Shown here: positions 1 through 36,100 of the stretch, one piece after another | Position numbering within the stretch: position 1 is the stretch's first letter | Layout: each line of letters starts with the position of its first letter | Assembly (NCBI GenBank): GCA_020536535.1 | Contig: JAHLWZ010000492.1 | Coordinates: 1-49,336 of the forward strand | DNA: 49,336 bases | Direction of reading: 5' to 3' | DNA from: Pelomyxa schiedti | Lineage: Eukaryota; Protista; Evosea | Translations under genes and position numbers: made by a program | Notes under the pieces: model-generated | The model's input: the letters and a program-made list of their open reading frames with translations, nothing else | Told to the model about the DNA's origin: nothing | The model's database searches: none

Positions 1-1669
1 AAGTACCACGCCGACCCGCGCGTGCGCTTCCTGTCGTACCGCAAGAAGACGACGGCGCTGCACCTCGCGCTGTACCGGCCGCAGCCCGACCTCGTGCGCG
101 CGATCCTGGCCGCGTGCGGGGACGGCGACGCGGACCGGGTCTCGCTGCTCCGCGCCCGCGACTGCGAGCTTCGGCCGATCAGGCTGGCGTGCTACTACAG
201 CGAGAGCGCCGAGGAGAACCAGGCCGTACGGGTTATCACCGACGCCAGCAGGTGGGGCAGCGCCGCGGTTGCTGAAATGGACAAGGACCGGCCGATTTTG
301 GAGTACTGCGACATGGACACGGCTCGCCCGGATGTGTTGAGGTACCTGTGCTCGGTGTTCAGTGGTGGCCTGGGGCTTGCTTTTTATAAGGCGACCTTCA
401 AGGATTACAAATACATGACAAATATAGAGGCTCAGGACATAATACTCGATCAACCGGGTTTTGTTGCTTGTGTCAATGAGGTGTCCTACAATACAAACAA
501 GACAACACCACTTTTTTTGGCAACATTAAGGAAGAATATGGGTGCTGTTCTCAAACTGCTCTCCCTTGGTGCTAATCCAAACACCTCATGTGAATATCAA
601 ATACGCGATTACGAGCCTTACGGGAACGCAAAAACGCCAATGATACTTGCTGTTCTTTTGAATCAAAAGGAGATGGTAGAAGCAATGGCCAAACACGGGG
701 GTCTACTCCCAGTCAAAGGTGAATATTTCTGGACACGATTTCCGGCGGACAAATATCCTCATATTGCCGGTACTTCCTAATTTCCGTTCCCCCCATTTTT
801 TTATGAAGGAAAACCCCACAGGATATCTGGATTTGTACGAAAGCGTGGCTGTAGTCCGCGTTTCAGTAAAGGACTATTCTGCTCTCGATTCGATAGACAA
901 ACTGCGCGGGTCCATGCCGGAAACGGATTTTCCAGAGACATCTCCAAATGTTCCGGAATCAGAAACGGTGCTTGATGCAAACATTGAGTAATTCCCATAT
1001 TTTCCAAAATCCATGAACCTGAAACAAAAATAAGTATTGATGACACGATTCTGTCATTGCTCGTACAATATAAAGCAGAATCAGCCGAAGTGTTGGGGTA
1101 TCTTGACATTCAATCGTTGGGCAGGATTCAACAAACTTCCCGATTTTGGTTCGAACTAATTGGAATCGAATTTGTATTCAACCGCTTTTCTTCAGGTACC
1201 ATGTGGGCCGCTCCAATTCATGTTGGAAGGTATTCTTTTATGTTGAAATTGCACCTTAGAATTAGGGAAATTTTTAAAAAAAACCCCAAAAGCGTGCCTT
1301 CATGAATTCAAGTGTACATTGGTCTCCCTCCACAGTAGAGCTTTCCAACAAGTATCTCCGTTACTTGGAAGCAGATAAAGAAGTGAAGGTATATATCAAT
1401 CTCCTCACCAAACGAAAACTCACAAATACACAAATACTAAGTGGAAACATGTGTGCTTCTTTTGGGCATCCAGGAATCTCTGTGCAAAATGTGGGAAACG
1501 GTTCAGAATACGAGAAAGAACTGACTGCACTGAACCAATGGGTGATAAGGACCACAAAGTAGGCTTTTTACCCCACAGTCTCGTGAAGTACAACTCCATT
1601 TACGAGAAGGCCAAATATCAGCTACACATTGACCACTTCTATGATCCCCCCAAAAAAACAGGCGAGTGA
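1..1669 (+). CDS. Ankyrin-repeat protein with a downstream F-box-like motif (5'-partial, multi-exon)
   Basis: ORF 22-780 has ankyrin motifs (TTALHLA, TTPLFLATLRKNMGAVLKLLSLGANPN, TPMILAVLLNQKEMVEAMAKHGG). GT-AG introns at about 770-820 and 988-1034 join it in frame to LSLLVQYKAESAEVLGYLDIQSLGRIQQTSRFWFELI (F-box-like) and later WKHVCFFWASRNLCAKCGKRF. The 3' exons are approximate. Confidence 0.6.
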
Positions 1670-1738: not shown

Positions 1739-3289
1739 TTAGTATGATGAGAAGGATGTGCTGTCATCACAGTCCTGCTGGGAGGGATCCAGGGTTTTGC
1801 CCCCGAGGATTTGTATGAGAAGCTGTTGTAGCCTCTCGGCCGCGTTGCTAAAGTCAAACCTCGCAAGGAGCTTCTCCAGACGAGACAAAATGTTGCGGAG
1901 TTTGTCCTCGCAAGCATCTGCTTCAGCTTCCGCATTTGGATCATCGTCTCTTCTCCTGCGGGATGCTTCAAACTTCAGCTCGTCAACCATCGACCGGAAT
2001 TCCCGCTCCATAACTTTCAGTTGATCGCCAACGCTGGTGGATGAAAATGCACTTGCTGCAGCCTCTGCGTGCTTCTTTGATTCGGCAATTTCGTGGCATA
2101 ATTGCATCCTCTCGGACATGGTCATGTTGGCAAGGTTTTTGGTTGCAACTCCAGTCCATTGGTCAATGTCTTCCTGCATATCATTCAAGTCAACCAGTGT
2201 ACCTTTGCGCACCTGTTCCAGCAACACAGAGTTCATGTCTCGCTCGATTTGCGCAAGCTGGGCACTGAGTTGTTCTGCTTCCACTTGAAGAGGAGTGTCA
2301 GCTGAGGGTGCGGTTGAGGTACGTATAACGTTGTCTAGGTGGGACTGCATATCAGCGTGACGCTTTTGGCGCTGCAGTTCTTTTGCTGCTGCTTGATATG
2401 CGGCGGGATTCGTTACTATTACAGAAGACGAGGTAGTCGAAGATGTATGTGTGTTAGCAGCCCCTTCCGATTCAGTATTATTCTGCCGCATCATGTTTGA
2501 AAAGCGTTTCTGTTCAATACTCCTTTGTCTTGCAGCACCTGCTTGTGCTTCGGAAAACACTCTCTTCAAGTCTGAATTTTGTGGTTCAAGTGCAAGTGCG
2601 GATCGGCTTATTTCAAGAGCACTCTGGAATTCGCTCTTTCCATTCTGTGCACTTGCCTTTCTATACATGGCTTTGACATTTTTGGGGTCAAGTACAAGTG
2701 CCTGCTGCGCAAAGAATTCTGCTGCATCCCACTGACTGAGTTTGAGGTATGTGGCTGATATGTTAAGCATAAGTGCCAGCTTGAGGGGGTCCAATTTTGT
2801 TGAATCAAATTCCTTTGGGGCACGATTGTAAGCAGATGTAAGTCGGGAAGCAGCTTCTCTTGGTGTTTGGTGTTTGTAAAAAAAAAAAAAAAAATCAGGC
2901 ACTGGAAAATGTACAAAGAAACTACCTGTAGGTAGAAAGAGCTTTTGAATATAAAGTGGGTGTCGAACTGGCATTGGAAAAGATAGTGTTCGCTTCACTC
3001 TTTAATCTCGTCGCCTATTTGTGAAAGGAAGGTTAATAGAGTTGTAGAAACACAACACTCATAATCAATCATACCTCCTTTAAAACATTGGCCGGCGTGT
3101 CAGGCTTTCCGGTCCACAAAGGTATCCCGTATTTCATCTCAACGAGGTCACACTTTTCTTCAGACACCAAGTTCTTTGTGGCATTACAACCAACGCAACA
3201 ACGAACCAAAAAAGAACCTGGGCTATTTCGAAGACTCGTCTTTGTGTGGCACGCTTGTCCCTGCTATCCCCCTCGTCGTCACTCGACAT
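1739..3289 (-). CDS. TPR-repeat protein (three-TPR co-chaperone-type clamp) with helical C-terminus
   Basis: The spliced frame starts MSSDDEGD at 3289. It reads ATRLKSEANTIF...YSKALSTYR (TPR1), LMLNISATYLKLSQWDAAEFFAQQALVLDPKNVKAMYRKASA (TPR2-3) and ALALEPQNSDL. Three short GT-AG introns. Confidence 0.8.
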
Positions 3290-3495: not shown

Positions 3496-3742
3496 GTGGT
3501 CTGGGTGAGGGACTGAGGGCTGAACAACCTTGTTGTCCTCATTTGTTATGTGTTTACTTATATCACAACTTTGTCTTAACTATTTACACGATACAGAGGG
3601 AGTTTCTAAGGTGGGTTAGTTGGCTGGTGTCTGTTAGCTTGAACTCACTGGTTCCCATGAATGGCCATAATTAGTTGGCCAGCTTTGTGCCCAATCATCA
3701 CACCAAGATTCCCTATTTCCTTCCCCCATCACTCCTCACAAA
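3496..3742. repeat. Diverged direct repeat, copy A (~245 bp)
   Basis: Aligns co-linearly by eye with 18978-19223. Shared blocks include ACAACTTTGTCTTAACTATTTACAC, TCTGTTAGCTTGAACTC, GAATGGCCATAATTAGTTGGCCA and CCCAATCATCACACCAAGATTCCCT. Confidence 0.9.
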
Positions 3743-4380
3743 AGAGGATGTCCTCCATCACTGAACCCAGTGGTAGTCACATTCTTTCAAAGCACTTCCA
3801 CAAGGTATTTTTCACTAGCTGAAGCTTCCATTCTTCAATACTTCTGGAAGCAATGCTGCAAGAGAACTCCAAGGGTGAAAGATAAAAAAGGTGCTTTGTC
3901 CCTTCTTTCCATTATGACTTTCACCTTTATTTAGGTGGTTGCCTGTGTAAGGACAATTGATGCTGCAGGAGGCTGTTTACCCCCTTTGATATGAAGCATT
4001 TGCCAAAGTCACTGCAGAATCAGTATGCAGATGATGGATGACTCACCCAAACTGGATCAAATCAGCTATAGTTCTATCAGCAGTCGCCGTGACATCACCA
4101 CACACCCTTACGGACTTCGCTTCGGACACCGAGAAGGGTTCGTCTTACAAAATCAATAAACAACACAACTTTCAGTCACCACTTTGTTGATGGCATCGTA
4201 AGGGATTTTTAAAAAGGAAAAAAACACAAAACCCACCCAATCCACTAAAATAAACACTTTGTTTCCTCTTTACATTCAAGTACGAACATCCCTGTGGGTA
4301 AAACCACACACCACGTTTTGGTGTCTTTTTTTGGACACTCATTGCCAGGCGGTGGTGTTACTCTCCCATAGTGCTAAAGC

Positions 4381-7300
4381 TTACAGTTCCAAATCATCAA
4401 GGAGGAGTGAGGATGTGACGGATATGGTGGCAGTGTGAGCAGGCACAACAACTGCAGGAGGACCAACTACCTGTCCAGGTGGTTGCCGATGAGGAATTGC
4501 AGCGTTTTTTCCCAGGGGCATTGATATTAGTTCAGGTGCATGGACTGTTGTGTGGGGATCACGAAGGAACTGCCGCATGGCAGAGAATGGAACAATGCAG
4601 GATTCCGAAACCGCAGTGCCGGTTGTTTCATGTGGCCCAAGGATAGCTTCCGCTTGACGAAGTATGTGCCCATAGTACTTGACTGGGAGCGCGAATGGTG
4701 CTCGCCCCATGATTGTGTCGTCATCGTAGAATCGTATCCGTTCAATGTTTCTATCCTCCGCTGGGGCTGGTGCATTGGTGAGGACAGTTAGGAAGAAGCT
4801 CAGTGGGGTTTTGGCAAATGCATCCGTGATTTCATTTAGAAAATTGCATACGCCGGTGACCCGGAGTGAAGTTAGGATGGCCGAAATTTGAACGTGGTAT
4901 AGAGGTGTATCTACAATATACTTTAGTGTTTCCTCAATTTCTGCTATGTCAGCTTCGCTGGCTATTTTCTGATCGGCGCTTGGATGAACTTTGTGGTTCC
5001 AGCACAATCCCATCATTGCTGGGAGATGCTCTAAGTGAAAAGCAGTTGCCACTGATGGCATTTCAGCCATGACTTGTTGACCTAACTTTTGCTCGTTCGT
5101 CAATGGCATGTCCATTGCAATGCTAACAACCCCTTTGGTATTGGGTACAAGTCTGTCAGACACTTGTAGTAATACGGCACCACAAAACGAGAAAATTGAT
5201 TCACTGATATGAGGTTCTCGTTGAATAAGAGACTTCACTTGCCCAAAAATACTGGGAGTCAGTGCTGAAAAATACCGGTGTTCCCTTTCCAAACTTTCCT
5301 GGAGTTGAGTGTAAAGAGTAAGTAGTCCTTCCATTCCATAATTGTATTCTGGTAGCTCAGACGCAATACTAAGATAAAAAGCAAAGCGCAAGGACCCAAA
5401 TTTGCACAGAGACTCGGCTACAACGAGGTCACTTGATAAGTGGGACTGGTACCCAGGAACCAAAAATAATGATTTCACAATGTCCAGAATAAAGTCACAA
5501 TCCACAGAAATTAAATCTCTTTCTAATAGGAGGTATGGGTTTCCACACACCTTTGGTGCATCGCTCCCATGAATTAAATCATAAATATTGTTCTGAATAT
5601 GAGGTACCCCAACCCAGCTGCCAGGTTTGTCCCCACCAGTGCCACTCCAAAGAGCCATTGACAATATTCCGAGACCCTTCGATTGTGGGAGGAAGCACGC
5701 CAATTTGGTATTCACGGGTATTTCCCTCTTCATATGTGCGAAGGTTGTCTGTATTGTGGTCTGGCACTGCCAGTTACTGACATGGTTGAAAACCGTGAGG
5801 AAATTTGTTTGAAACTGAACAACAGAGGACTTCAGAGGTTCCCCATAGTTTTGAATGAAGCCAAAGAATGAGCCTTCCTCCTCTGCAAACGCTCTAGTGA
5901 CCGCCTTTTCTTTGCAGCACTGTTGCAGTTTGTGCAGAAACTTAATAATTCCATAAACTGCTGAAACAGAAGCGCTTTCAAGAGAGCTCTTTTTTTCACC
6001 AAGAAGGTTAAGGAGTGGGTAAGTAACGTAGTTTTCCTTCAGGTGACTCCAAAATTGATGTTTAAAGCTGAACCTACTGCGAGCTAGCATTAGCAGTGAT
6101 CTTTGGCAAGATTCGTTGAAGGGTTTTGATAATAGATCCCCCTCGGTTAACTTTAGCTGGAGAAGGGCATCCGATGATGTTCGCTTTGTTTGCTTATCAA
6201 ATTCGCTTAGTAAAGTTAGGGGATTCTTATACTGTCGGCATAGCTGTAAAATGTTATCTTTCACCAATGCTCGTGTTACCTCTCCGCTTAAAGCAATGTT
6301 TTCTACTTTCCAGATCATAGCATGCAACCACAAAAATGTGCAGTCTTTTGAACTTGCATGGAAAAGGGAGTTGTGTAATATTTTAATTTGATCTGAAATT
6401 TGGGCAAATATGCTTTCCAGTGAATCAGCTCCACTATTGGCAACAGTAAGTCTATTCCATAGGTGCCCAGCACAGCTGAGAATTTCTATGAATGCTTCCA
6501 CTATTGGCGGGGAATCTTCACCTGATCCATCTACTTTCAACGTGGAAACGATTTGGTCAGCTCGCACATTGAAAATATTACCCTTCAGGATGTTGGGAAG
6601 TGCGGCTTCTACTAGACCTCTTTCTTCACGGGGAATTGTCTGTATGTACCTCCTAATTTCGGTTGTTGCAATGACCCCAAACTCTCGTCTGAATAGTTCA
6701 CGGTCCCCAAAGTATCCTCCATGTTTTTGACGTAGGTGTGAATGCGCATCCTTCCCGCAATCCAACAAACAGTGTCCGCAAAACCCACATTTACAGTTTT
6801 TATTGCTACATGTGAAAGCGAAACAGCCATCCCAATCCACAAATGCTGCTTTGCAGCGGGGGCACCTGGGATTCATCAAATCTTCGATTGTAGGGCGATA
6901 CTTGTTCAATATTGCGTCAGACTGCCGTATGGTCTCAGCCATATCCTGGAAAAATTTCATGATTTTGTGTCCTCCAAGGATTGAACTGACCAAACATAAG
7001 GTAAGTATACGAACTTGTACGTCTTTTTGTCTAATCAGACTTCCACTCAGTGATTTGAACAATGTCCGCGCCTCAGCTGAAAAATCACCTTGTAGGATAG
7101 GGAAAACGGCCGAGGAAAAGTTATCTATATGCTGTGGTGCCACATCAAGACAGAAAGCCCCGACACAGGAAGCTTTACCAATAAAACTCAATGCCTTAAA
7201 GCGGTCCAGGGTTTGCTTGGATTGTTGCACACTGTACTCGCAAAGAAGAGAGACTGCATCTGTAAAGTCGTCTTTGCATGCTAAAGGAGAAGCCATTTGA

Positions 7301-10300
7301 AGGCATTTGGCAAGCTCGTCTACAACAGGGCACTGTGATATACTTTGAGGATATTTACCGGCTCTTATTCGGGAAATAGCCTTGGCAATTTCCACAGTTC
7401 CAGCGGCACTTCCGCAGCGTAACACAAACAATGCAGCTTCACGTGTATCCGCCACATCATTCTGTAGTAGCTTCATTATAACTGGGTGAGAAGCAGCAGG
7501 TTCTTCACAGTTATGGAGGTCAATAAGAAGTGATGTAACGAGTACCATCCTGATAAAGTAATTTAAGGGGGTCTTGGAAGAGAATTTTTCAATGATCCCG
7601 TCATCGAGGTTTCCTAAGTATATAGCATCGAAGGCACAGTGAACAGCAAGTATGTAGTGACGGTGGTCTGCAGTAATAAACTTTGTGAGACAGGCAGCCA
7701 ACTCTCCGGTGGGACTTGGTTGCTGGTACAGCATGGAAAAAGCTCTGCGAAGAAGAAATGCTGTTCCACACAATAAGCCCTCCTTAGGATCATTTAAAGG
7801 GGTATGAATGATAAACTGCAAGGCACTGATTATCAGGCTCTCCTTGGGATCATCGGTAGAAAATAATTCGAATAGGAAGTACTTGATGAAGTTATCAGGG
7901 CCTTTTAATAAAGCATTCACTCCTTCTGCTTCGTTGTTTGCAAATATCTCATACAATTTGACAAGTGCGTTCCTACTTTCTTTCCTCTGGTCTTTTGAAG
8001 CTACCATAGACATTGCCCTAACAATCCCCCAATTTATGGAATGGTGATATTTGGTTAACTCTGCAAGAAGCTCAATTCTATTCAGTGGAACAATACCATC
8101 AACAGATGCCAGTGGTAACAAGTCTTCTACAGTGTTTCCAGAAAAATTATTCACCAGTTCAGGAGAAAAATCGAGCATACAAAACTGCAAAAGAAATTTG
8201 AACCATTCTGGGTTCTCGGCAATCACTTTATGGAACTCTACAATAGACCCAAATGCGTTTTGATGGCTCATTTTAAGAACTTTCTCAAGGAGTCCCAGTC
8301 TCTGTTGTTCAAACCCTGCCCCAATGCAAAGGACATCTTCGAAGTACTGTGATAAACACTTGGGATTAACAGTATCAAGACCAGCGCTTTGAATAAACTG
8401 CTCCATTTCATTAGTGTTGCCCTCCAAGTCAGACAGGTGCTTGGCAATAAACGGTGATAAAGGAAATGACACTGTGGTGAGTTTGCCTTGGCAAGTTCTG
8501 GATTGCTTTGGGAAGAGTAGAGCACCATTGTTTGACTCGACATCAAGACATTGAAATGTCGGTAATGGATTCAAATTCAAGCAACTTTCAATATCACAGC
8601 GAGGTGTAAGCTCTGAGGACAATATGAGGCGAGATACGAGTTCCATCATTTCTGGAACATCAAGTAATTGCAGGGAATGGAATTGCACCATCCTGTGCAA
8701 TAATATTACAAGTACCCTCACAACAAAACCCCCAAGATAATTCACGTAAATTGTGCACAGGGAATCTGAACTGTACTTGGCTTTTTGAAATGCCAAAGTA
8801 TGCCATTTGGAAAACTCGATTTTACAGTGTTTTGTGTTCTCAAGGATGATTTCTACAAGACTTCTGCTGAAGGAAGTTCCTTTCAGAAGTTGTTGAAGAA
8901 ACTCCAGAAGTGGATTGACCTCCGATGCGGAGGCGGCAATTGATTGGCAAATTGTTGTAAGGTTGTCATTTTCAAGAGCAAGGGCAGTTATAAGATCCTC
9001 GGTGAGAATTTCATGAAGATACAATTCTCGATCAAGGTCCCCAAGCAGAGATGGCCAGGGTTTACCTGCCATAGAATGAGGAACGACTTCATCTGCAAAA
9101 ACTTGTGCCCAGGTTCGATCAAAGAGAAGGGAGAAAGGGATTTTTGCAGAGTTACTCTCCATGAAATCCGAAACAACAACAATAAGAACAACATGCTGGT
9201 GCTGTGTCAGAGTTTCCGAGGAGACAGCATACATAAAGGCGTCAAGGAGAACAGATTGTGGTGATGAAGTGTCTAGAATAAAGATGCTGAATGCGCTTCT
9301 GTTGTCGTCAGTTGGCACTCTTTTTAGTGCTGTCAAGGCTGAATGAACCTCACTACTTGTAGCTTGATTGAGTATAATCATATTTGGAGGCTCTAATGTA
9401 ACCATAGTTGACTCGTCAGACTTGAACAGTTGGGTAACCTCTTGCACTAAGGCTGTCACAGAAACTTGGAGCTGCTCAGTAATAATCATTAAGTGCCTAT
9501 CCTGAAGTGCAAGCTGTGACAGTTCCTTAAACGGCAGATTGCAACCAGATAGCTTCCAGATATGATTGAGTGAGGAGATTGTTATCGTGGCGGCGGGACT
9601 GTCCAAACCTTGCACCAGGTTGAGGGACAGTCTTCTCAGATTTTTTCTGGAAAAGCAATAGCACAGTCTTTTCATGACCTCATCTTGCTCAGAAAATGCA
9701 TAGACCGCAGAATCTAAACTTTCTTCTTTGAAACCAGGAATCAAAAATTCAAAGAGATTCACCACCTTTCCATCACTGATCTGGCAAGACCCTTTCAGGG
9801 AGACAATACTCCTGCATTTTCTTTGAGAAGGACTCAAGGCCGAAGCATAGGTTAAAATGGTTTTGGAGAAACGATTGATCATGGGAGGGAGGACTGAGGA
9901 TTTTAGTTCTTCTTGGTCCTCCAAAACAATGCACCTGAAACTTGGACGTACAAACACTGCTTGTGTAACACCAGCCATGGAAAGCATTGTTTTGTGCAAA
10001 GCGTCTGAGTCGTCATTGGAAAAAGACCTGTCCTTGTAATAGTGTACATTTAAAGCATCTAAAAGAGATTCGTAGAGATGACGGCTTTTCACAAGGATGA
10101 GAGTTTTCCCTTCCCGGAGGCACGCCTTGATCCTCATCATTTGTTGGACCAATTCAGAAGTAGTTGTTGCTCCCCTTGACGCACCGGTAGATTGAAATAT
10201 CACTGTGCTTTGTTCTTTTTGAACAAGCCCCATTGAGAACAATAGCATTAGTGCGGCATTTGCTTTTGTAAATATCATTGTATGCCGAGAGGTGACTTCA

Positions 10301-13300
10301 TATAGTGAATAACTGATGACTTCCGGTGCTGGGATATTATGTATATCAAGGTCAGTGAAATACTGGCAATATGCTTGATGTGAGACTGGAGCGGCATGTT
10401 CCTTAAAACGCAATGTAACTGTCTCTTCCGAAAAATCCTCAGAGGGATGTGTAGACCTCCACTTGATGGTCTCATAGTATAACTGCATTTTACAACAGCA
10501 ATCACACAACAAAATCACATCACCAGATTCCCTTTTCCATTCCCATTTTGCAATCACATCCTTGAGAAGCCCAAAGGAGCTCTGCGTTGCTTCTGAAAGG
10601 AGCTCTTCTTGTTTCTGGTCGGGGAACCCTCTAAGATTTATGAGAACTGCCCATCGTGTGATATGTGAGTTGATTTCTTCGGATTGTGCCAACTGGATTT
10701 GGTTTAAATGTAATGATTGTTCAATAGGCACAGCAAGAATCCTAATGGTACTCACAGTTGAATAGAAGTCTCTCATTCCAAAATACCATGTCATACTCTC
10801 ATTTCGGAGAATATTTTGACTGAAAGCAAAGGAGAAATTAGTTATCCATCCAGCCGTGTGTGCTTGCCCCAACCCTCTTAATATAGCCTTGGCAGTTATT
10901 TCCAGATCATTAACTGGGGGGTTTCCTCTATATACAACTCTTCCCCTGCCCATTTTTGAAGCATCCAGACGATAGTTGGACACCCCAATGATTGGTAGAC
11001 GCACTGCCTTTCCATCAACATTTATTCCGTGATCTATCATGCTGTGCAAAGACATCAGTGGGTTATGAATGGACCCAATTGTGGCTCCAACTTCTTCAAG
11101 AACAAGCACTACAATACGTCTACCCCTGAGTGCTATTTTATTGGCAGCATTCTGAGCCAGGGCAGCTCTTCTTGCATTACTGTGTACATGATGTGCCGTA
11201 GTATAAGGAGAACACTGGATGACATGCTTCTGAATTACAATATTCAGTTTTCCCAAGAAAGATTCTTCCCTCCTATCTTCCGTTGCTTTGACAAGAAGTT
11301 CGAGTGTTCTTGATTTTGTAGAACCAGGCCTTCCCACAATAAATAAGGTGGAAGTTGTACAGACAGCACAGAGAACTGCAAAGCAGTTCTCTTTCAAAGC
11401 CTGATTCACGGCAAGACCTCCTTCAATATCTAAATCCTGTGCAAGATATGTTGCGAACTCGTTGAATGATTGGTACAGTTCACATGAGTCATATGAGGCT
11501 GCAAGTGAAGCAGGAGGTGGCCCTGGCATGAAATTGGGATTAAGTCCAGGAAACCAACCTCTGACAGTGTTCCATCTTGTTTGTACTCTAATGAGGTAAG
11601 ATAGCCGCTTGCTAGAATCAAGACGCAGACAATAAGTACTGACGAGGGCAATGTGCACAGCGTTTGTCAAAAACCTGAAGTATGGGAATGGACCCACCAG
11701 TTGTTCTTCTTGCAGCTTGGCTCTCACCTGGCACCAAAAGGTCTCAAAGACAAGAGCTACAAGTTCACATCCTTTTCTTATATCTCTAAGAGACACGACA
11801 CTGATTTCATCCAAATATACATCATGCCGGATGAAGTCCTGAGATGTTAAGAGCAAATCAACCAACAAAGTGCGAAACTTGATCCAAAAAGCTTCACCCT
11901 GAGTGCCATCACCAGCCTGTTTGAAATCATTTCTGAGAACTTGAATGTTGTCGAGTTTATTGATCAACCATGACACCATACTCGAGGCCATAAGGAGTTC
12001 ATCTGTTATATTGTCTCTCCCTTGTATCACAAGTGTGTGAGCTAGAGTGGAGGAAACTTCACACAAAGGCGTTTCAGTTGTTGCTGAAGTACCCCAATCC
12101 CAAGCCAAGGAATACAGGGTTTCAGGGGAGTGGTGTACCTGATACACAAGATTCAAGGGTTGGTTTTGAAGACCTTTACTGGTATTTTGTTGATATCTCA
12201 AGAAGTCAAGGCCTCCAACATCCATCTCTGCTATTGCTCTGTTTTGTGCTTCTGTGCGTAATTTCCAAGGATTCAGAATGGCAATGAAAACGATGTTGCT
12301 GGGAACTCGAACTCCAAAGCAAATATGATCACATAACATGTCTTTTGCAGTCCACAAGGCACTTGTTGTATTCACTTCATCAAGTAAAACGACATGCTGC
12401 CTGTTGCTACCGGTGGCCTTTTCAATAATGGGCTGCATTAAATGGAAGAAGTCTTCTTCAGAAATTCCCTCCTGAACATTGATTACATTGAAGGTTTGGC
12501 CTGATATACTTGAGAGAAATTGAATAGTTTCCGTTTTACCACAGCCAGTTTCCCCCATGATGCACACAGGGATGCCCGCAAAGAGCCGAATTTGAACAGA
12601 CATGATTCGAAGAATGTTATCAACTGTTAAAGTGTAAGTAGGCTTTTGTGTGCCATCTCCAAACAGGCGGATAAGATAACTTGAGCAAATGGTCATAAAC
12701 TCAGCACATGACATATTTGTATCGATTTTGGTTCCTGTGGACTCTAGATACTTCACGGCAGTAGAAACACGATCGATGACATCGCATAGTTTTACTGTTC
12801 CCACAGTCTTTCCACGTGTAAGTGTACTAAGGACATCTAGCACTGGGCGGGCACCTTGGAAACACCCAATTACCTCCAATAGAATCTTCAAAGGAGGGTT
12901 TTCTTGATCAATGGAATACGGCTTCTGACCCAAGTCAAAACAAAGCTTTTGTAAGTAGGCCCGATTGATTGGATGCAATACACATTCATTTACTGTGAGC
13001 CATTCAAGGAATGCTGGGCTTCTATTGGCACAAGCCATCTCTGCATTTTTAATGAAATGTAATGGAGAAAAGGCTGCAGTTGATGTGATATGATAGCCCT
13101 GTTGGGTTACTACGAAAAATGGCATCTCTCTCCATTGTTCAAATTTTTCCATATTAGTGCACCGTTGAATGTCATCTTGTGGAGCCAGCTTGTCAAAAGG
13201 CTGCATGGCTGGCTTGGCTAAGTTAATGGAACAGTTGAGAATCATTTTGGAGAAATGAAAGGCTAATTGCATAATAAATTGTCCTTCTTCCAAGCTTTCC

Positions 13301-16300
13301 GCATATTCCCAAGTTTCAAATGCCATTGCAAAATCTCTTAGCTGTGAAACCACAAGAGAAAAGAGGCGCCTTAAGTAACTTATCTCAGAGCCTTTGTGGG
13401 TGGGTATTTTTCTCATGCAGAGATTGCATAAAATGCGTTTGCACTTGTCACAGCGAGCAAAGCTCTCATCCACCTTTACCATCCACCTTTACCACAGCTT
13501 TGCATTGACTGCATGAATTTTGGCATGCCCTGGAACAGGCAAAATAGCTTTGCATCAAACAAGAGCAACTGCAAAAGTTTTGGCAAGCTACAGATGTAAC
13601 TATGTCAAATAAGTCAGATTCCCCAGCAATTGAGAGCATCTGGATGTTGCGTCGGGGAAGAAGTACTCTTTTTCCTTCTTTCATAGCATGGTAAGTAGCA
13701 ATCAACATTTGTGTTCCTAGTTCTTGTGCATGTGGGTAAGATTTCCATGTATAAAATATATTTGAGTCTATAGTCTGCCTAGGAGTCATGATATTCGTTG
13801 AAATCCCTGAGCACAATGGAAGTTCCTGAAAATACTTGCATATGGGTATTCTGTCTCTTTCATCCACTTCTCCAGTATTACAAAGCTCCAATGCAATAAC
13901 ATCCTTAAGATGCCGAGGAAATGTAAAACCTGATGGATCACGCCAACAGGAAAGCAGCAAGTACTGGCAAAGGAAAAGGTTGACCTCTTTGGCATTGGCA
14001 TTATGACCAATGTTAAAGTGCACTATAATTCCTTGGGGTGATGTAATGGATCTAGCTTGCAATAGGCGCTTCAGCATTGTGTTGATGGGTGTTGTGTCAA
14101 TGGATAACTGAACATGCATAACAGGATTTCCAGATGGATCAAGCTTGTCACAGACATGTTGTTTTATGATGGAGTAAGTCTTGCCTTCTCCACAGTGCCT
14201 GGAGTGAACAACATAGATATTATGATACATTCTGGCAATTGGTTTTAGAAGACTAACGATTTCATCACATTGTACTTGGCTCAACTCGGTCTCCTCCTTT
14301 CTTAGTAGATTGCAAATGTAATTTTTTTTGTCAGTTTTACAGATAAAGAGAAGTTTTGGATGAGGTCCGTGTATTTGCTCTTCCAATGTATGCAAGTGAT
14401 TCATACAGCTTGTTTGGGCAGAGTACTTCAGGTTATCAAAGTTAGCTAGCCAAAAAGTAACTTTGGCAGCCTTAAATTCACTTATGCGGGTGAATAGGGC
14501 CCACCTATCTAAGAAATCAGTCGCATCTGTCTCGGTGGTGTGGTTGTCGCAGAACAGAACTTCAATTGCACTTGGGATTCTCTTGTTAAGAGCCACGTGT
14601 GCGGAGCAGACCACTTCTTCAAGAGACTGAGTCCCAGCCACCTTGATAAGCCTGTAAGGCAGTGGACTAGAAGACACAGATAAAAGATGATTAGTGGCAA
14701 GAGCCGCAACCCCAGGGCTGGGATTCACCAGTGTTGATATGTCGAAAAATTCAACCAAGGAGTCACATAGAATGTCAAACAGGGTCGTGGCCTTGTTCAC
14801 ACTTTTAGCCTTTTGAAGGTGTGCATCCAACTTGGCAGTCATCGTTTCGGCGTTGCACCCAATCGACAAGAAGGTCGAAAATAGTGCATCTTTGTCCTGG
14901 ATCCTCAGAGCACTAAGGCACGATACAAGCTGCGATCGCGACAGAAACGAGAGTATAGGCCTTTGGTTTTGGCAATCGCCAAAGGCCGTCATCCATCTTT
15001 GGAGGCTCTCTTCGCTTGATGTCACCAACTTGTCCAGCTCAGCCACTCGGAGGGAACACTCGAACGATATGGTTTTGTTTTGGTAGTCTGGGTGACCAGA
15101 CTCACACAACTTAGTGATGACTTCGCAGAGTTGGTAGCTCTTATCGAATAGCCGATTGAATCTTGTAACATATCGCTCTCGGTCCTGTACTCGCGCGATA
15201 TTATCTGGCAGTGGCAAGTCAATATCGACCTCGTTCTGAGTGGCAATCACGCCACTCGTCAAAAGCAGTTGGGAAGGCAGGGCCTCTAATTCTTCTGGAG
15301 CTATTTGGGTTTCTTTGGTACGGCCAGGCTCCATGAATGTGGCAGTCACGGACACTGTCGCGTCTTTCACTTCAATGCTGAACTTGCCATGGACTAAAAG
15401 GTTTTTAACAACTGTTATGGTTTGTTTTTCTTCCGTGTCACTGAGCAAAGCCTCTCTAATCGCTGGAATCCCTCCTTTCTTCAAGTACTTATGAAGAATT
15501 CTCAGGGCAATGGCTGCACCACTGCATGAAATGAAAAATTGGAGTAATTCAACCTGTGCAATGCGAGTGTGTTGCCTGATTTTATGGTATACAGGGTTAG
15601 ACATGATCGAGTTACGCTCACATATAATCCGAAGTGCATGCAAAATTTCATGTGTCTCTTCTCTAATGTCTTCCCCTTGACGGTGATCGATTCTGGAATT
15701 AAGGGCAGCAGGTTCGGAGAATGTACATAGAACATCTGTATGTAGCCGTTCTTGAAACATGACACACCAAAACAAGAAGGGAAAGCCTCTAATAACACAT
15801 TTCATCAAAGGGAGATCATCGATGAAGTTGGAATACACTGCTGCCAATGTGCCAAATGGAAGAAGAGAATTTTTCCAATCGAGTGAGCAAAAGGCATTAA
15901 CAGTCTCTGGGATAGTTAGTCCGACCTCAGTCAATAAGGCTTTCAAAGCAAACACATCCTTTTCGATTGACATTCCCTCCATGCAGGCTACTAGCTTAAT
16001 AATGATCTGAGTGTTTTCGATGCTGCTTCCTGGTGACACCTCGACAAGGATTTGCGCTTCATTCTGAACAAAATGGGTCACTTCGTTCATAAGGAACTGG
16101 TTGCATTTCTCCATTTCCTGTCGTAACGCCGCTTCCGATGTCGTTGGTTCCTTGTTAATCATGCCAAAGACATTCCGAAGTCTTGTAAACACTTTCTCAA
16201 ATACCTTTGAGACTGTGTTCACACTTGTTTGGCCTTTCTTGAAGTCTTCAATCATCCCCATCCAGTTGTTGAATTGGAACTCAAAGAATTCCACCCACCT

Positions 16301-18676
16301 GCTGGTGAGTTCTCCCTCATACCTTTTGGTTGGGACTTCCGTTTCATTCCAAGTAATGGCAAACAGGATTGATTTTTGGAGCTTTGACAAGGTACTCGAG
16401 ACGGCTCTGATCTGTTGGTGGCAATTCGGAGGCACCCACAGGTTTACTGTCTGCCTTTCTGTCATGTTCGTAAATTCGGCCAGCTTTTCCTGAGAGTACT
16501 CTTTGGCCTCCTTCTCAAACTGCTCACATTGTTGCATCAGTTTTAAAGAGTTGAGGAACGCTTCCCACTGGTCTTTGATATCCATGTGGTGCCGCTTCAA
16601 CCTGGTGAAACTTGCTGGATCAAAATTCGTTTCAATGATTTGAAGACGTGTCAACAAGGCTTCATCATCTAAAGACGGAATTGCCACCGACTTAATGGTG
16701 TGCATTTCAATATGGCTTACAAGTTCTTTTGCATCGGTTGAAAGAAGATCCATGCGTCCTGGCTCGGCGCCATAGGCAAAGGCTTGGTCGAAGAGCTCGC
16801 TCACTTCTTGAGATGACAGGTAATGGTAAAGATCGCAGTTCGTCGTGTCGCCCCCTTTTCGCACGATTTCGAGAATGTGACCTTGTTTCTGAAGTGACAC
16901 TTTACATTGCGTGATTGCAATGGAGGTGAGTCTGTCCCAAACCTTTTCGTAAAGCTGCATCCACAGTGGAGCGGGAACATCTGGTTTGTGAATCTCCCCC
17001 AAGAAATTGATCAAAGTTACCAAGAAATCTTTTGGGGTTGAGTCAACGATCCCAAAGAGGTCATCTTGCTCTAATTGATGCAGCAAGGACCCTGGGGATA
17101 CGCACTCCAAAAAGAACTTGATACGTGGTAAAACCGACGAGTCAATCTCCTTGGGAAGCATTTTGTGGAATTCCCTTACAAAGGTTTCATTTTGTTTCAC
17201 TAAATCAAGAACTCCAAGCAACGCAAGGATGCAGTGCTCCTTTGAATTGGATTCTGTGCTGATCCTCGAGCTCAGTTGCGTGGAAAGGTGTCTTATCCAC
17301 ACAAGCTTCGACGGTTTCTCTGGAGCCATCAGCAATGCTTTCAAAATTTCTGCAACGCTTGGATTGAGTGCACCCTGATTATCCAAAGCCTTGAGGACCT
17401 TGAACGGAATTGCAGAGATAACCACTACGGGAAGCACCTCAATGCAGAGTTTCCACTCTGAAAATGTTTCTTTTTCATTCAGCCTTGTCACCAACTGAGT
17501 ATAAAGCTGAAGTTTGCTGCCGGAAAACAAAGTTTGGCTCACCTGTTCCAACTTCCCCACTTGCTGTCCCATTTTGCACGTGAAACAAAAATCGACAATC
17601 GAAAGGGGACTGATTTCTTGCCAGCAAAATCCCTCAAGTACTGCAGTTTCGTAATCTGAAAACGTTCCAGCTTCTATATCTAATGACCTGCCTTGAATTT
17701 CACTGTGAAAGTATCTGAGATATTCCGTTGTTTTCCTACTCATAACAGCATCAGAGCAGGATGCAACCGCAAGTGCTGCAACGAGATAGAATAGTCCTTT
17801 GCCGATTCGCCCAGCACCAGAGAGGTCTTCATCTTGTGCCATCTTCAGGAACTGTGGGAAATCCTTGAACCCATCCAATGAGTCTTTAATGGAGTCTGGG
17901 GGAACAAATCTGTTGTTGACGGTCAGCTCGTTCTTCAGGGAGACTGAGCACGTGATGACTGCTTTGAGGAGCACTTCATCCTTGGGAATGTCAGGAAGAG
18001 CACCCAGCATCTCCAAGAACTTGTAGAAGTCCAAGATTAAATTTGAGCAAGCTTGAGCTCGTATTCTGGAAAAAATGACACCCAGTTCCTGGCAATACTG
18101 CAGGGGATCACACTTTTGTGCCAAGAACAGAGCACAATCCTGGAATGCATTGATGGTCGCCCCTTCTGTTGAATTTCGTGTCACTACATGGTCAAACTTT
18201 TCGTTGATGGAATCGACATAGAGCATGTCACCTTGAAGTGTCGGTGCCTGTATGACCCTCAAATTTGTCGCCACGCCAGCGTCTGCCCAGACTGACCTGT
18301 TCTCAGAGCTTTCCCCAACCATCACTTGAAAATCCACCCTCCTTCCAGCAGGAACTCGTGCTTCAACCCATAAACAGTGGTTTGAGAATGAACTCTGAGG
18401 GGGTGAAACCACCAGCTGGCTGTAAAACTTCAAAAACGGAGTTTTCCCTCCCAGGTCGCAAACGAAATACAAAAAGATTCGCACCGTGGCCTCTTCGACG
18501 GACCCTGGCCCTGGGGTTTCTCCTTGCGGATCGAGGCTCGCCGGGATCTTTTCTGGCTCTGAGACATTTTCGCCAGGGACTTGTCTGACTGGGGTGGACC
18601 GCGGTTGGTCGCGGAATTGGGCTCCGCTTCCGGACAGAGGTCCTGGCGGTACGCCACCTCTTCCCCTTCCTCGCAT
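4381..18676 (-). CDS. RNF213/mysterin-like giant AAA+ ATPase - E3 ubiquitin ligase (~4760 aa if the 13-bp duplication at 13467-13494 is removed; frameshifted as assembled)
   Basis: RNF213 signature segments are seen directly: SRHCGEGKT; YTLTVDNILRIMSVQIRLFAGIPVCIMGETGCGKT (Walker A, ~12533-12556); LLDEVNT (Walker B); ALKENCFAVL...LFIVGRPGSTKS (~11311-11334); VLEEVG; IGVSNYRLDASKMGRG; YFGMRDFYS; LYESLLDALNVHY; PPMINRFSK; and C-terminal LACFLPQSKGLG...HIQN. The first ATG is at 18676 (the ORF-track start at 18760 is GTG). Confidence 0.9.
6720..6865 (-). other. RBR-type RING2(Rcat)/IBR-like zinc finger within the RNF213-like protein
   Basis: CPRCKAAFVDWDGCFAFTCSNKNCKCGFCGHCLLDCGKDAHSH fits the C-x2-C...GC-x4-C-x4-C-x4-C-x2-C...H pattern of IBR/RING2 domains. 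Confidence 0.8.
13467..13494. repeat. 13-bp perfect tandem duplication (CATCCACCTTTAC x2) that frameshifts the RNF213-like gene
   Basis: The minus strand reads GTG GTA AAG GTG GAT GGT AAA GGT GGA TGA. Deleting one unit gives ...AVVKVDESFARCDKC and fuses the 1764-aa and 3033-aa ORFs. Confidence 0.95.
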
Positions 18677-18977
18677 TTGGTTGTTTGGATTGTTTTTGCC
18701 AGGTATTTTTTTTCGTATCCGTTTTTTCCCAGATAAGGGACTAAGTTTGTTTTCCTTCACTTAGTTGCACTTCTGACATAGCTGGGACTTCTTCTCACCG
18801 AAATCTGATTATCCAAAGAAAAAGGAAACTCTTGCCCGGAGCCTCACTGGTGAGGATCTGCTGGTTGTGTAAGACGAACCCTTTTGCTGTCAGAGTGATG
18901 GTTCAAGTTACTGTATCTCTTATATTTTCCAAGAACAGTGATGTGTGGTAACTTAACGGTAGTAGTGTGTAAGAGTG

Positions 18978-19223
18978 GTGGTCTGGGAGAGGGACGTTGT
19001 GGGCTGAACAGTGTTGTTGTTCTCATGTGTTGTGTTTGTTTCTCTAACAACTTTGTCTTAACTATTTACACAATACAGAGGGGGTTTATAAGGTGGGTCG
19101 GTTGGTTGGGGTCTGTTAGCTTGAACTCGCTGGTTCCCGTGAATGGCCATAATTAGTTGGCCAACTTGGCGCCCAATCATCACACCAAGATTCCCTTAAT
19201 CCTTCGCCCATCACTCCTCACAA
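18978..19223. repeat. Diverged direct repeat, copy B (~245 bp)
   Basis: Same orientation as 3496-3742 and co-linear with it; lies ~300 bp upstream of the RNF213-like ATG. Confidence 0.9.
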
Positions 19224-33129: not shown

Positions 33130-36100
33130 TCAGTGTCCATGTGCCATGTTTTTAAGCTGTGTGAAAGTCGTCCGGGCTGTTGGTCGCCGGGCTGGATCTG
33201 TGTCCACACATTTCATTATCAAATCCACAAGCTGGGCCTGGGTGCCTGATGGTATCAGCGAGTGTATGTCCTCATTTGCTCTTAAGCGGATAAGCTCTGG
33301 CTTGGGAATCATCTCAGCCAACATTATTCCAAAAGCAAATATATCGATACTGTTGGTGAATGGCTTGTGTGCAACTACTTCTGGGGCAAAGTATCCAAGA
33401 TGATCCACAGTTGTGCCCAACACAGGGGAGGGTGTTGTAGCGTCAACAACAGAGAAATCGGCAACCACTACTTGAGCTATCTTCTCGCCTTCTATTTTCA
33501 CCAGGATATTCTCTAACTTGATGTCACGGTGGATTAGACCGCGGCTGTGGATGTGCTTTATGCCATGGATGATGTGCCTGGCATAATGGAGAATATTTGG
33601 GAGTGAAAGTTGGGCGATGTTTTTCGCCAGATACACTCCAAGGGAGCAACTTAGCAGTGGGTATGTTAGGCACAACTTGTTTTCTTGTTTGAAAAGCAAC
33701 AGGAACTTGAGAACATCCCTAGAGGAGTGGCTGGCGACCAGTGTGGTGCTATAGAATACTTCCTCAAAGCCTCTCTGGTCGTCTTCAATGGAAGCTTCAG
33801 GATCCATTACCTTAATTGCCACTTGCTGACCACACCATTCAGCCTTGTAAACACTGGAACAACATCCCCTTCCAATTTGAAAGCCTGGGGAGAAGTCAAC
33901 CTGGGGTGGAGTTTTGCTGTCAATGATGTTCCCGGTTAGCCAGGTATCCGCAATGATATTACCGAATGCACGGTGCAAAGCCCTCCACTGGTCCACAGTA
34001 GACTCACTTACGCATCTGCGCATTAAATTCTTTTGCACTGCCTGTTGGTGTAATGTAGTCCGGTATCCTTCGAATAACTGCTCCACACTGTTTAGTCTTT
34101 CCTGTAGCCACTGCTTCCAGGTAACTGTTTTGATCAGGGAGGTTAGAATATTTGCTGCTAATTCTCTTTTAAACTCTCCATTGACACGTTTGGTTCTCGA
34201 GTATATTTGTGAAGCTGTAGCAGTGATAAGCCCTGTAAGTAATAAGGGTGGACCTAAAACCACGAGAAAAATCGTTGCAAATCCAGCCAACATCATGGCG
34301 CCCCCAATATATATCATGTTATCCTTGGAGAAGAAATCGCGCTTTCGAGCCTGATTGAAGAAGTCTCTCATCAGGCCATCCTCCAAATTGTTGAACTTTT
34401 TTGTGCACTCGTCAACTGAAGCACGTATCTCACTATCAATCTCTATGCCAACTGGTATAGTTACATTCTCGTTGATCCAGCCTATAAGGTCCTCAATGAT
34501 GGCAGATTCAGCTTTGCTTCTGCATTCCGACAAAGTATGGTTATCATACTGGGTGGTAATTTGTTCCGCATAGGAAAGATACTCCTCTTTTACTTCCTTC
34601 AGCTTTTTTTTCAGGTGTTCCGGAAAGGATGTCACACGCGCCATAATTCCTGCCTTCAGGGACTCCTTACTCTCGACAAGCTTCTGATCCAGCTCAGCGG
34701 CTTTTCTTCTTATTTCTTCTTCTGTATATGCTTGTATATGGTGGAAGTTAAAAAAGAAACAGCCACATGCACTAGAGATCTGCTGAAGACCCAGTTGACA
34801 GCGCCTAAGTTGACCAACAACAACCCAGTGCACAAACCTGTTTATAAAAAGTCCAAAGGTAAACTGACTTTCCTCCTCACTGTTTTCTACAAAATCTGTA
34901 GCACTAACACAGCAGAAAGAGGTGCACTCCTGGAACTTTGCAGGGAGGTCAAACTGACTTGATGCCGTTGTTCTGAGCCTCCCCAGGCACTCCTGATTAT
35001 ATTGCTCAATGTCTCCTTTGCTCAGTGGTGGGTCCTCTTTGGTTCTTTTCCAGGCCCTTTTTATGGTTGACATGTCGGCCTTGGTGTTGGCAAAAAAAAA
35101 GTCTGGTAGATCTCCATTTCTATATGCAAGGCCAGTAATTAGTTCTTGCATTTGCTTGAAGGCGTGATCTTCTCCTGCCTCGATTGCACCAGCTTTATTA
35201 AAGCAGAAAACGATGCCGTGTGGGCGATACAGAGATAGAAAGCTTTTAATAAAGGGGAAAACTATTCTTCCGTAGGTATCCCTTGAAGCAGCACCTGCTA
35301 GATCTACAACCTCAAGACCAGCTTCAAGCAGTGGAATTGGGTATTCAATAACAATGACTGTTGTCAACCACTTTTCTGTGGGGAAAAAAAAATCAGTGTT
35401 GCAAGAGAAAGCATCATCGCACCTTGAGCTTCTGACATGGAACCGCGCGCAAGGTAGTGCTTCAGAATAACACCTGATAGTGTAGTATGCATACTTAAGT
35501 CCTCGAGTTTTGTCTTTTTGAAGCCACCATCAACAATTTCCCAAGAGGATACGCAAGCATTCACGAGAGGTGTGTACTTCAAGACACATACTCGCGCGGT
35601 GGTGTGAATTTCTCCTATTGGGAGTAATTCACTGTGTTTTCCTTCCATACTCAACAGGGTATTTATCAGGTATGATTTCCCTGTGGAGCTTTGAGAAAAC
35701 AGAAGAGCTGGCACACGGTACCGCTCCCAGTGGGACCAAAGAATGCTATTCGTGCTGCTTGTTCACTAACAGATACCTTCTCTGTAAAACTGGTTGATGC
35801 CGGGGACATTAGAGCAGTTGCTTGCAAATCGCCTCCCAGTGCAGTTGTATATGTTCGTTGGGCGTCTTTGAAGCTAAAAAAAAGTGAGCAGGTAGCTAAG
35901 TGTAAAGCGCAACAACCTCTGCCAGCACTTCGACACCTCTGGGAAGATGCGTCTATGCAATAGATCGACCGCATTGTAAAGCTTCCTGTGGGGTGGATCG
36001 GACATTACGGAACAGGAGTTGATAAACGATGAAGCCGCCGTGTAAGTCAGTTGTGGCCTTTGGTCCTCCTCAACCAGGTCACGTACATCTAGAGGCAAAG

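Follow-up and report, generated by a model that had tools for sequence, protein, structure and literature searches.

The window analysed here is a contig of 49,336 nucleotides from the anaerobic amoeba Pelomyxa schiedti (Evosea; GenBank assembly GCA_020536535.1, contig JAHLWZ010000492.1, positions 1 to 49,336 of the forward strand). On the minus strand it carries a gene for a giant protein which, judged by its sequence, is a true relative of RNF213, an immune ubiquitin ligase (E3) of humans, in its N-arm, AAA core and C-terminal E3 scaffold. At the place of the RZ finger of RNF213 it has a different module, a zinc finger of the RING2 (Rcat) type of the RING-between-RING (RBR) ligases. We read the protein as belonging, at full length, to the RNF213 scaffold family, with RZ exchanged for a mobile RBR-type RING2 module. 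The module would work by transthiolation via Cys2220, and its action would be controlled by ATP. To this reading as a whole we assign a probability of roughly 60%.

The RNF213 scaffold

The protein is encoded in two consecutive open reading frames (ORFs), ORF A for the N-terminal part and ORF B for the remainder (Table 1). In profile alignments by hhalign, residues 639-1605 of ORF A corresponded to residues 1110-2129 of bat RNF213, i.e. the N-arm, with a probability of 100% (E = 4.2e-40, 880 columns). The first 640 or so residues of ORF A had no match. The AAA core matched the solved RNF213 chains in phmmer searches with E of about 1e-61; midasin was far weaker (8e-9). AAA_5 was the sole Pfam hit above threshold in the protein. 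The core is of the dynein-like kind and has two nucleotide-binding units homologous to those of RNF213. The C-terminal 1,000 residues aligned with RZ-bearing RNF213 proteins at 99.2% (E = 6e-20, 808 columns), and over all comparisons the hhalign probability of the C-terminal domain was 99.2-100%. A first-pass annotation of this DNA had founded the RNF213 relationship on tandem AAA+ motifs and the C-terminal domain; both were borne out.

A C3HC4 RING as in RNF213 was found neither in ORF A nor in ORF B by regular expression, Pfam or profile alignment, in agreement with what the annotation had reported. When profiles were aligned globally, the RING of RNF213 fell opposite a gap in the finger-bearing clade, and among 122 RNF213-family proteins gathered via the AAA core RING families were recorded for some animal members only. 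The RZ finger was likewise missing: there was no Pfam hit for PF20173 and no match to a hidden Markov model of RZ made for this analysis. The RZ site holds the RING2 module instead.

The finger is of the RING2 type

The strongest argument for the identity of the finger comes from proteins in which it occurs together with other RBR domains. In the fly DEAH helicase P0126 Pfam recognizes a RING (1654-1699) and an IBR (1721-1784), after which the same finger follows at 1805-1869. Similarly, P0142 has a RING, then an IBR, then the finger, and P0144 has a KH_DEAH11 domain upstream and a Pfam IBR immediately before the finger. Because the finger occupies the RING2 slot in these proteins, it is by homology the RING2 of the 'Helicase/Plant I' RBR subfamily, an ancient group described by Marín (PMC2904391). 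The P. schiedti finger was 57% identical over 53 residues to that of a Daphnia DEAH-RBR and 37% identical over 133 residues to the C-terminus of an Ectocarpus helicase, which favours an exchanged module over drift. In the P. schiedti protein itself, Pfam and a pattern search found neither RING1 nor IBR before the finger, which is the single Cys-rich finger of the C-terminal half.

Profile and fold searches gave the same answer. A profile of 20 fingers was run against all PDB sequences and retrieved the RING2 of CUL9 (E = 1.9e-6), followed by the RING2 domains of parkin and ARIH1 (1.7e-4). The stretch 'dGCfavtC' aligned on 'GGC(N/M/L)H M(V/T)C' of these three ligases, with the conserved Cys on the catalytic Cys and Ala on the catalytic His. 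AlphaFold2 modelled the finger with a mean confidence (pLDDT) of 81 and a 156-residue module, from an alignment of 89 sequences, with 91.8. For both models the top 50 Foldseek matches were all RBR E3s. VIA-align placed its best matches in two RING2 domains, residues 330-390 of ARIH1 (Z 5.6) and 412-465 of parkin (Z 5.4), with IBR domains below them (Z 3.7-4.0). The RING2/Rcat-like, RBR-type character which the annotation had read from the sequence was thus recovered by independent routes. In a fold search with the whole module helix noise was dominant (Z of about 5-6), and RNF216 alone spanned most of it; language-model features were nearest to Rcat_RNF216/IBR clusters, which is a lead only. 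The module has about 120 residues, compared with about 90 for RZ, and is kept as one unit in stand-alone and fused proteins.

Conservation was counted in 183 domains from 172 proteins. The candidate catalytic Cys was present in 180 of the 183 domains, and in all 17 of those from RNF213-like proteins; the preceding Gly was found in 169. At +2 from this Cys, where the annotation had noted Ala in place of His, Ala is the rule throughout the family (162/183; Ser in 16). A DAHxH motif is almost invariant. The last ligand following it is Cys at +4 in 161 domains and His at +5 in 16, the latter in the amoebozoan RNF213 subclade. By homology with Ariadne-type RING2 eight zinc ligands are predicted, and Cys2220 is not needed among them. 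The eight suffice for two zinc sites and leave over two invariant residues as predicted non-ligands, the candidate Cys and the second His of DAHxH. The predicted arrangement is that of a RING2/Rcat domain, two zinc sites with a free candidate Cys between ligands 2 and 3. The spare His of DAHxH may serve as general base in place of the absent +2 His. RZ uses a Cys/His dyad on adjacent loops (PMC12075652); the putative pair of Cys and DAHxH-His would be similar.

Many proteins carry two tandem fingers (P0005 from Daphnia carinata, P0123-P0130). In some of the second copies the candidate catalytic Cys is missing ('FSGSFAISC', 'VDGRAAVTC'), as if they had turned into non-catalytic partners.

The module sits at the RZ insertion point

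From the first Walker A to the finger the distance is 1,883-2,010 residues in the RING2 proteins; from Walker A to RZ it is 1,795-2,100 residues in most RZ proteins, with one outlier at 2,454. Apart from a P. schiedti paralogue described below, the nearest relatives with RZ are euglenozoan, namely P0020, P0021 and P0267 (Papus, Diplonema). The whole region aligned with these at 100% probability (E = 3e-39, 1,002 columns), and CPRC of the finger faced CPNGH of RZ. In a masked test finger and RZ were cut from both alignments and the flanks were aligned separately by hhalign. Against the euglenozoan proteins the N-terminal flank gave 95.3% (E = 2e-8) and reached Q678/T668, 2 and 12 residues from the cuts. 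The C-terminal flank gave 99.9% (E = 4.6e-36) and started at Q14/T11, 14 and 11 residues past the cuts. Cross-controls of N- versus C-terminal flanks yielded E of about 0.8. With the more distant animal-type RZ set the masked C-terminal flank still aligned at 99.2% (E = 5.7e-20), and the N-terminal flank was weak (E = 1e-3). By alignment, then, the RING2 module has the same insertion point as RZ, and the replacement proposed in the annotation is upheld.

The motif by which the annotation had located this point did not survive. It had equated NKYRPTIEDL (ORF B 2193-2202, just before the finger) with the PTMPEDL motif in front of RZ in RNF213. The resemblance is coincidental: at this position the clade has QHRRAIEEMM, QHRIAIETFM and the like, and profile alignment sets PTMPED against a gap. 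The helix in front of the finger is part of the mobile module, since stand-alone proteins have it too (RHRLHIAENILTLKCPRC). On the other side of the finger, ORF B 2250-2270 (H.GGYFGDRELFRREF) resembles the stretch after RZ in P0020 (HAGNKRLGNIHAFRNKF), by chance or as a shared helix.

Distribution and origin

Among the 122 RNF213-family proteins 20 had the finger, that of the window included, 42 had RZ and 60 had neither; some of the latter are fragments. Other AAA+ proteins with RING2 thus exist, at least 19 further RNF213-like ones from Amoebozoa (Mastigella, Synstelium, Pyxidicula), a chrysophyte (Epipyxis) and metagenomes. The swap is common to RNF213-like proteins of the Amoebozoa type and of the stramenopile type. 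The AAA-core tree split the finger-bearers into two subclades; these lie, together with the three euglenozoan RZ proteins, in a single clade with good support. Monophyly of the finger-bearers, imposed as a constraint, was not rejected on the AAA tree (approximately unbiased test, p-AU 0.29), and on the module tree the constrained likelihood was even higher (p-AU 0.875). Because of these two results a single capture is the simplest reading; the swap is ancient and probably happened once rather than twice. The deepest split of the AAA tree has RZ proteins to either side and RING2 proteins to one side only. Therefore, RZ is probably the older state.

The finger model was built from six seed sequences; P0023 was not among them and was left out of later analyses. 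The finger is more than a chance pattern: an exhaustive search with its profile yielded 3,127 representative proteins when the threshold was E ≤ 1e-3, and 1,445 when it was E ≤ 1e-10. The partner domains in 84 mid-sized hits were IBR (18), RING (12), protein kinase (9) and RRM (5), in addition to superfamily 1 (SF1) helicase, CCCH, RWD and PARP domains. So the solo-RING2 module is widespread, fused to kinases, helicases, PARP and RNA-binding domains. An Rcat domain without RING1 and IBR is common, and this bears on the definition of RBR ligases. Nucleocytoviricota are one of the few taxa in the Atlas feature cluster nearest to the module; giant viruses may carry a solo finger. Two other members of the RNF213 family, P0030 and P0036, have U-box, UBA, WWE and MIB_HERC2 domains, and the family seems to have swapped ligase-related parts repeatedly.

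In the P. schiedti assembly the finger was found once. A paralogue at C1063 4347-17152 has a genuine RZ finger (Pfam ZnF_RZ-type, 33.9 bits; '...YIPTMPHDE...CNSCGAY...GECGKPM...'); its reading frame lies on the minus strand in five pieces, from introns or frameshifts. Another paralogue, at C957 18192-29750, is a single frame of 3,853 codons with a degenerate RZ-like stretch (HYRCQCGTNFILGCAGK...CPSC, 12.8 bits).

Gene structure

ORF A (13466-18760, minus strand, first ATG at 18676) has 1,736 codons and overlaps by 17 bases with ORF B (4381-13482, minus strand), which has 3,033. Both are colinear with full-length homologues and leave no gap; on P0007 ORF A stops at 1675 and ORF B begins at 1681. 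Because the two ORFs are contiguous and colinear on these homologues, we regard them as one intronless gene with a single frameshift. The cause is a perfect tandem duplication (Table 1), and homologues have an uninterrupted frame at the equivalent point. A 13-bp intron was considered and ruled out by the perfect duplication and the open frame of the homologues. The single protein of about 4,760 residues assumed in the annotation is thus supported by the colinear homologues, but for this copy it holds only if the frame break is read through.

Table 1. Features of the RNF213-like gene (positions in the window; residue numbers are those of the ORF named)
Feature	Positions	Strand	Basis or remark
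Whole RNF213-like gene	4381-18676	-	Two ORFs joined at one frame break; about 4,760 codons; no intron needed
N-arm/stalk region, ORF A 639-1605	13862-16762	-	hhalign versus N-terminal regions of RZ-type RNF213
Tandem duplication, 13 bp, perfect, ATCCACCTTTACC twice on the plus strand	13468-13493		Shifts the frame; sole interruption of the gene
AAA+ core, ORF B 281-1220	9823-12642	-	phmmer to RNF213 chains 9jwg, 8s24 and 6tax; Pfam AAA_5
First Walker A, GETGCGKT, ORF B 310-317	12532-12555	-	Matches the first ATP site aligned in RNF213
Walker B, VVLLDEVN, paired with GETGCGKT	12370-12393	-	Motif
Second Walker A, GRPGSTKS, ORF B 717-724	11311-11334	-	Aligned to 'GKPGSSKS' of RNF213
Walker B-like, LVLEEVG, paired with GRPGSTKS	11086-11106	-	Aligned to 'VVLDEVG' of RNF213
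RING2 (Rcat)-type module (N-terminal helix, two-zinc finger, helical extension), ORF B about 2185-2312	6547-6930	-	AlphaFold2 model; stand-alone and fused relatives
Zinc finger CPRC...DGCFAFTC...C...FCGHC...DAHSH, ORF B 2207-2249	6736-6864	-	Motif and profile
Codon of Cys2220 (ORF B numbering), candidate catalytic Cys	6823-6825	-	Conservation; alignment on the RING2 catalytic Cys
C-terminal domain, homologue of the RNF213 E3 shell/C-terminal domain, ORF B 2313-3033	4384-6546	-	hhalign, finger masked

The P. schiedti assembly (52.4 Mb, 5,337 scaffolds, single-cell) was made from amplified DNA of seven cells (PMC8887013). For this reason the frameshift may be an artefact or a single allele; a real mutation is possible as well. 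The rival explanation that survives best is that the P. schiedti copy is a recently broken pseudogene, the architecture being real in its relatives and no full-length protein being made here. The perfect duplication, which shifts the frame, and the uninterrupted homologues speak for it. However, the frame break is the only defect in 14.3 kb and both ORFs are otherwise open, the origin of the DNA allows for an artefact or one allele, and ORF B, whose start ATG falls within the duplication, would by itself retain the AAA core and the E3 part. We consider a pseudogene a serious possibility, though on balance not the probable one.

P. schiedti genes have 7.43 introns on average (PMC8887013). Despite this average, the 14.3-kb gene has none, and the C957 paralogue likewise is a very long single exon. 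The frame break is surrounded by a Cys-rich insert (C.N.C...HLM...C..C...C..C....C..C) at about 13400-13590, some 300 residues before the first Walker A. It was considered as a hidden RING1 and dismissed: the insert has no RING pattern and, within the clade, is confined to the closest subclade, to which Mastigella, Synstelium, Pyxidicula and others belong. Direct repeats of about 245 bp flank the gene at 3496-3760 and 18978-19223. Both are members of a dispersed repeat family that counts at least 42 copies genome-wide. They are 87% alike and no closer to each other than to copies elsewhere, so the idea that they bound a mobile unit or retrogene was rejected. Neighbouring frames at 33133-35367 (minus), 22-777 (plus) and 1742-2998 (minus) had matches to a protein kinase domain, ankyrin repeats and, weakly, TPR.

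Proposed mechanism and alternatives

From the homologies described above we infer how such a protein would act. A Cys-reactive ubiquitin-conjugating enzyme (E2) charged with ubiquitin would dock on the RNF213-like C-terminal scaffold. Ubiquitin would be passed by transthiolation to Cys2220 of the RING2 finger, which would hand it on to a substrate, and access would be under the control of the AAA core with its two intact ATP sites, as in RNF213. Because RING2 sits at the exact spot of RZ, the arrangement suggests that both fingers do the same job. As to the substrate, P. schiedti is described as a host of prokaryotic endosymbionts (PMC10579272). A role toward intracellular prokaryotes would be reasonable on this account.

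Several points weigh against this mechanism. The canonical catalytic His at +2 is absent, replaced by Ala or Ser in nearly all domains. The F, W and Y by which the C-terminal domain of RNF213 contacts the E2 UBE2L3, located in bat RNF213 ('DFNPNWSLRDTLVSYME'), have no visible counterpart here in a local alignment of low identity and low confidence. The statistics of the fold matches are weak (Foldseek E = 5e-3, Z 5.6). Modest scores are explained by the small size of the domain (60 residues), and they were weighed jointly with the sequence evidence. The Pfam IBR_1 match to the finger is below threshold, 17 bits against a cut-off of 27. The frameshift splits the gene, so this copy may be inactive or yield just the 3,033-residue product of ORF B. 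Finally, in the literature searched on RNF213, whose coverage left out most subscription journals, we found no biochemical work on any member of this RING2 subfamily.

Some of these points fit another explanation, in which the finger is a non-catalytic zinc finger with IBR or RING2 fold. It would have a structural role or bind ubiquitin or a partner; the protein would either be a catalytically silent scaffold or have its active site elsewhere. IBR_1 is the sole Pfam hit of the finger, some fold matches fall on IBR domains, and the catalytic His at +2 is lost family-wide. Yet 180 of the 183 domains retain a Cys that is dispensable as zinc ligand and that aligned on the catalytic Cys of Rcat, RING2 matches outrank IBR matches, complete RBRs have the finger in the RING2 slot behind a separate Pfam IBR, and in two unrelated protein families it takes the place of a known catalytic element. 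We therefore hold a non-catalytic finger to be unlikely.

That the finger arose by divergence of RZ in place, or conversely RZ from an ancestral RING2, would agree with their common site and with a short motif behind the finger (H.G...G....F+..F) that looks similar between the RING2 clade and the euglenozoan clade with RZ, but is very improbable: the module shares up to 57% identity with fingers of unrelated proteins and brings its own flanking helices, RZ differs in having a single zinc site and in its ligand pattern (PMC12075652), and RZ is found across the deepest split in the AAA tree, RING2 on one side of it.

The capture of a catalytic RING2 module by an RNF213 scaffold thus remains our preferred reading. 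It can be extended, tentatively and with chances somewhat short of even, to RZ and RING2 being interchangeable transthiolation heads that fit one and the same socket in two unrelated machines of immune type, the AAA+ giants related to RNF213 and the helicases related to ZNFX1. On this view an 'AAA+-Rcat' class of E3s lacking RING1 and IBR would be at work in many protists, and in Pelomyxa, whose cells are full of prokaryotic endosymbionts, the RING2 and RZ paralogues could split targets.

Comparison with known systems

Ubiquitin transfer through RZ by RNF213 and ZNFX1 has been worked out recently, and RZ is viewed as a class of its own. The exchange of RZ for an RBR finger, at the same site in RNF213 relatives and at the C-terminus in ZNFX1 relatives, provides comparative evidence for RZ as a detachable transthiolation head. 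It is also comparative evidence that E2 docking and regulation would be the part of the giant scaffolds. The literature searched held no description of the AAA+-RING2 architecture or of a parallel swap to RING2 in ZNFX1 and RNF213. For experimenters these proteins are natural chimeras, with intact orthologues in Mastigella, Synstelium and Pyxidicula.

RNF213 (mysterin) is the closest known system. Homology covers the N-arm, the C-terminal E3 scaffold and the AAA core with its two pairs of Walker A and B motifs, and both proteins have a small Cys-bearing zinc finger at the same insertion point. They differ in that RNF213 has a RING and a one-zinc RZ with a Cys/His dyad, whereas the P. schiedti protein has no RING and a two-zinc module of the RING2 type. 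The AAA core is only 25-28% identical to that of animal RNF213-family proteins. In RNF213, UBE2L3 bound to the C-terminal domain passes ubiquitin to the Cys/His dyad of RZ, and the RING is dispensable; RZ has one zinc site with a ligand pattern unlike that of the finger described here (PMC12075652). The RZ-bearing paralogue at C1063 and P0020, P0021 and P0267 align in their flanks up to the finger, but keep RZ.

Among RBR ligases the DEAH-helicase RBRs (Plant I/DEAH11-12) have the same subtype of finger, which acts as RING2 there. Ligand spacing and the position of the catalytic Cys are common to the P. schiedti finger and the RING2 of CUL9, ARIH1 and parkin. RNF216-type Rcat has the same layout of helix, Rcat and helix, and the longest structural overlap with the module (100 residues, Z 5.7). 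In contrast to RBR ligases, the P. schiedti protein has neither RING1 nor IBR, Ala in place of the +2 His, a conserved DAHxH and a helical tail of about 60 residues.

Among human proteins RZ reportedly occurs in RNF213 and ZNFX1 only (bioRxiv 10.1101/2025.10.14.682297). Six large SF1 helicases, those of Thecamoeba (P0149) and Ectocarpus among them, carry the RING2 module about 110 residues from the C-terminus, and the best PDB match of the Thecamoeba protein was ZNFX1 (E = 3e-29, versus 1e-17 for Aquarius). ZNFX1 itself is an SF1 helicase with a C-terminal RZ. The ZNFX1-like helicases of protists and algae which bear a C-terminal RING2 module instead thus mirror, on a different scaffold, the exchange seen in the RNF213 family.

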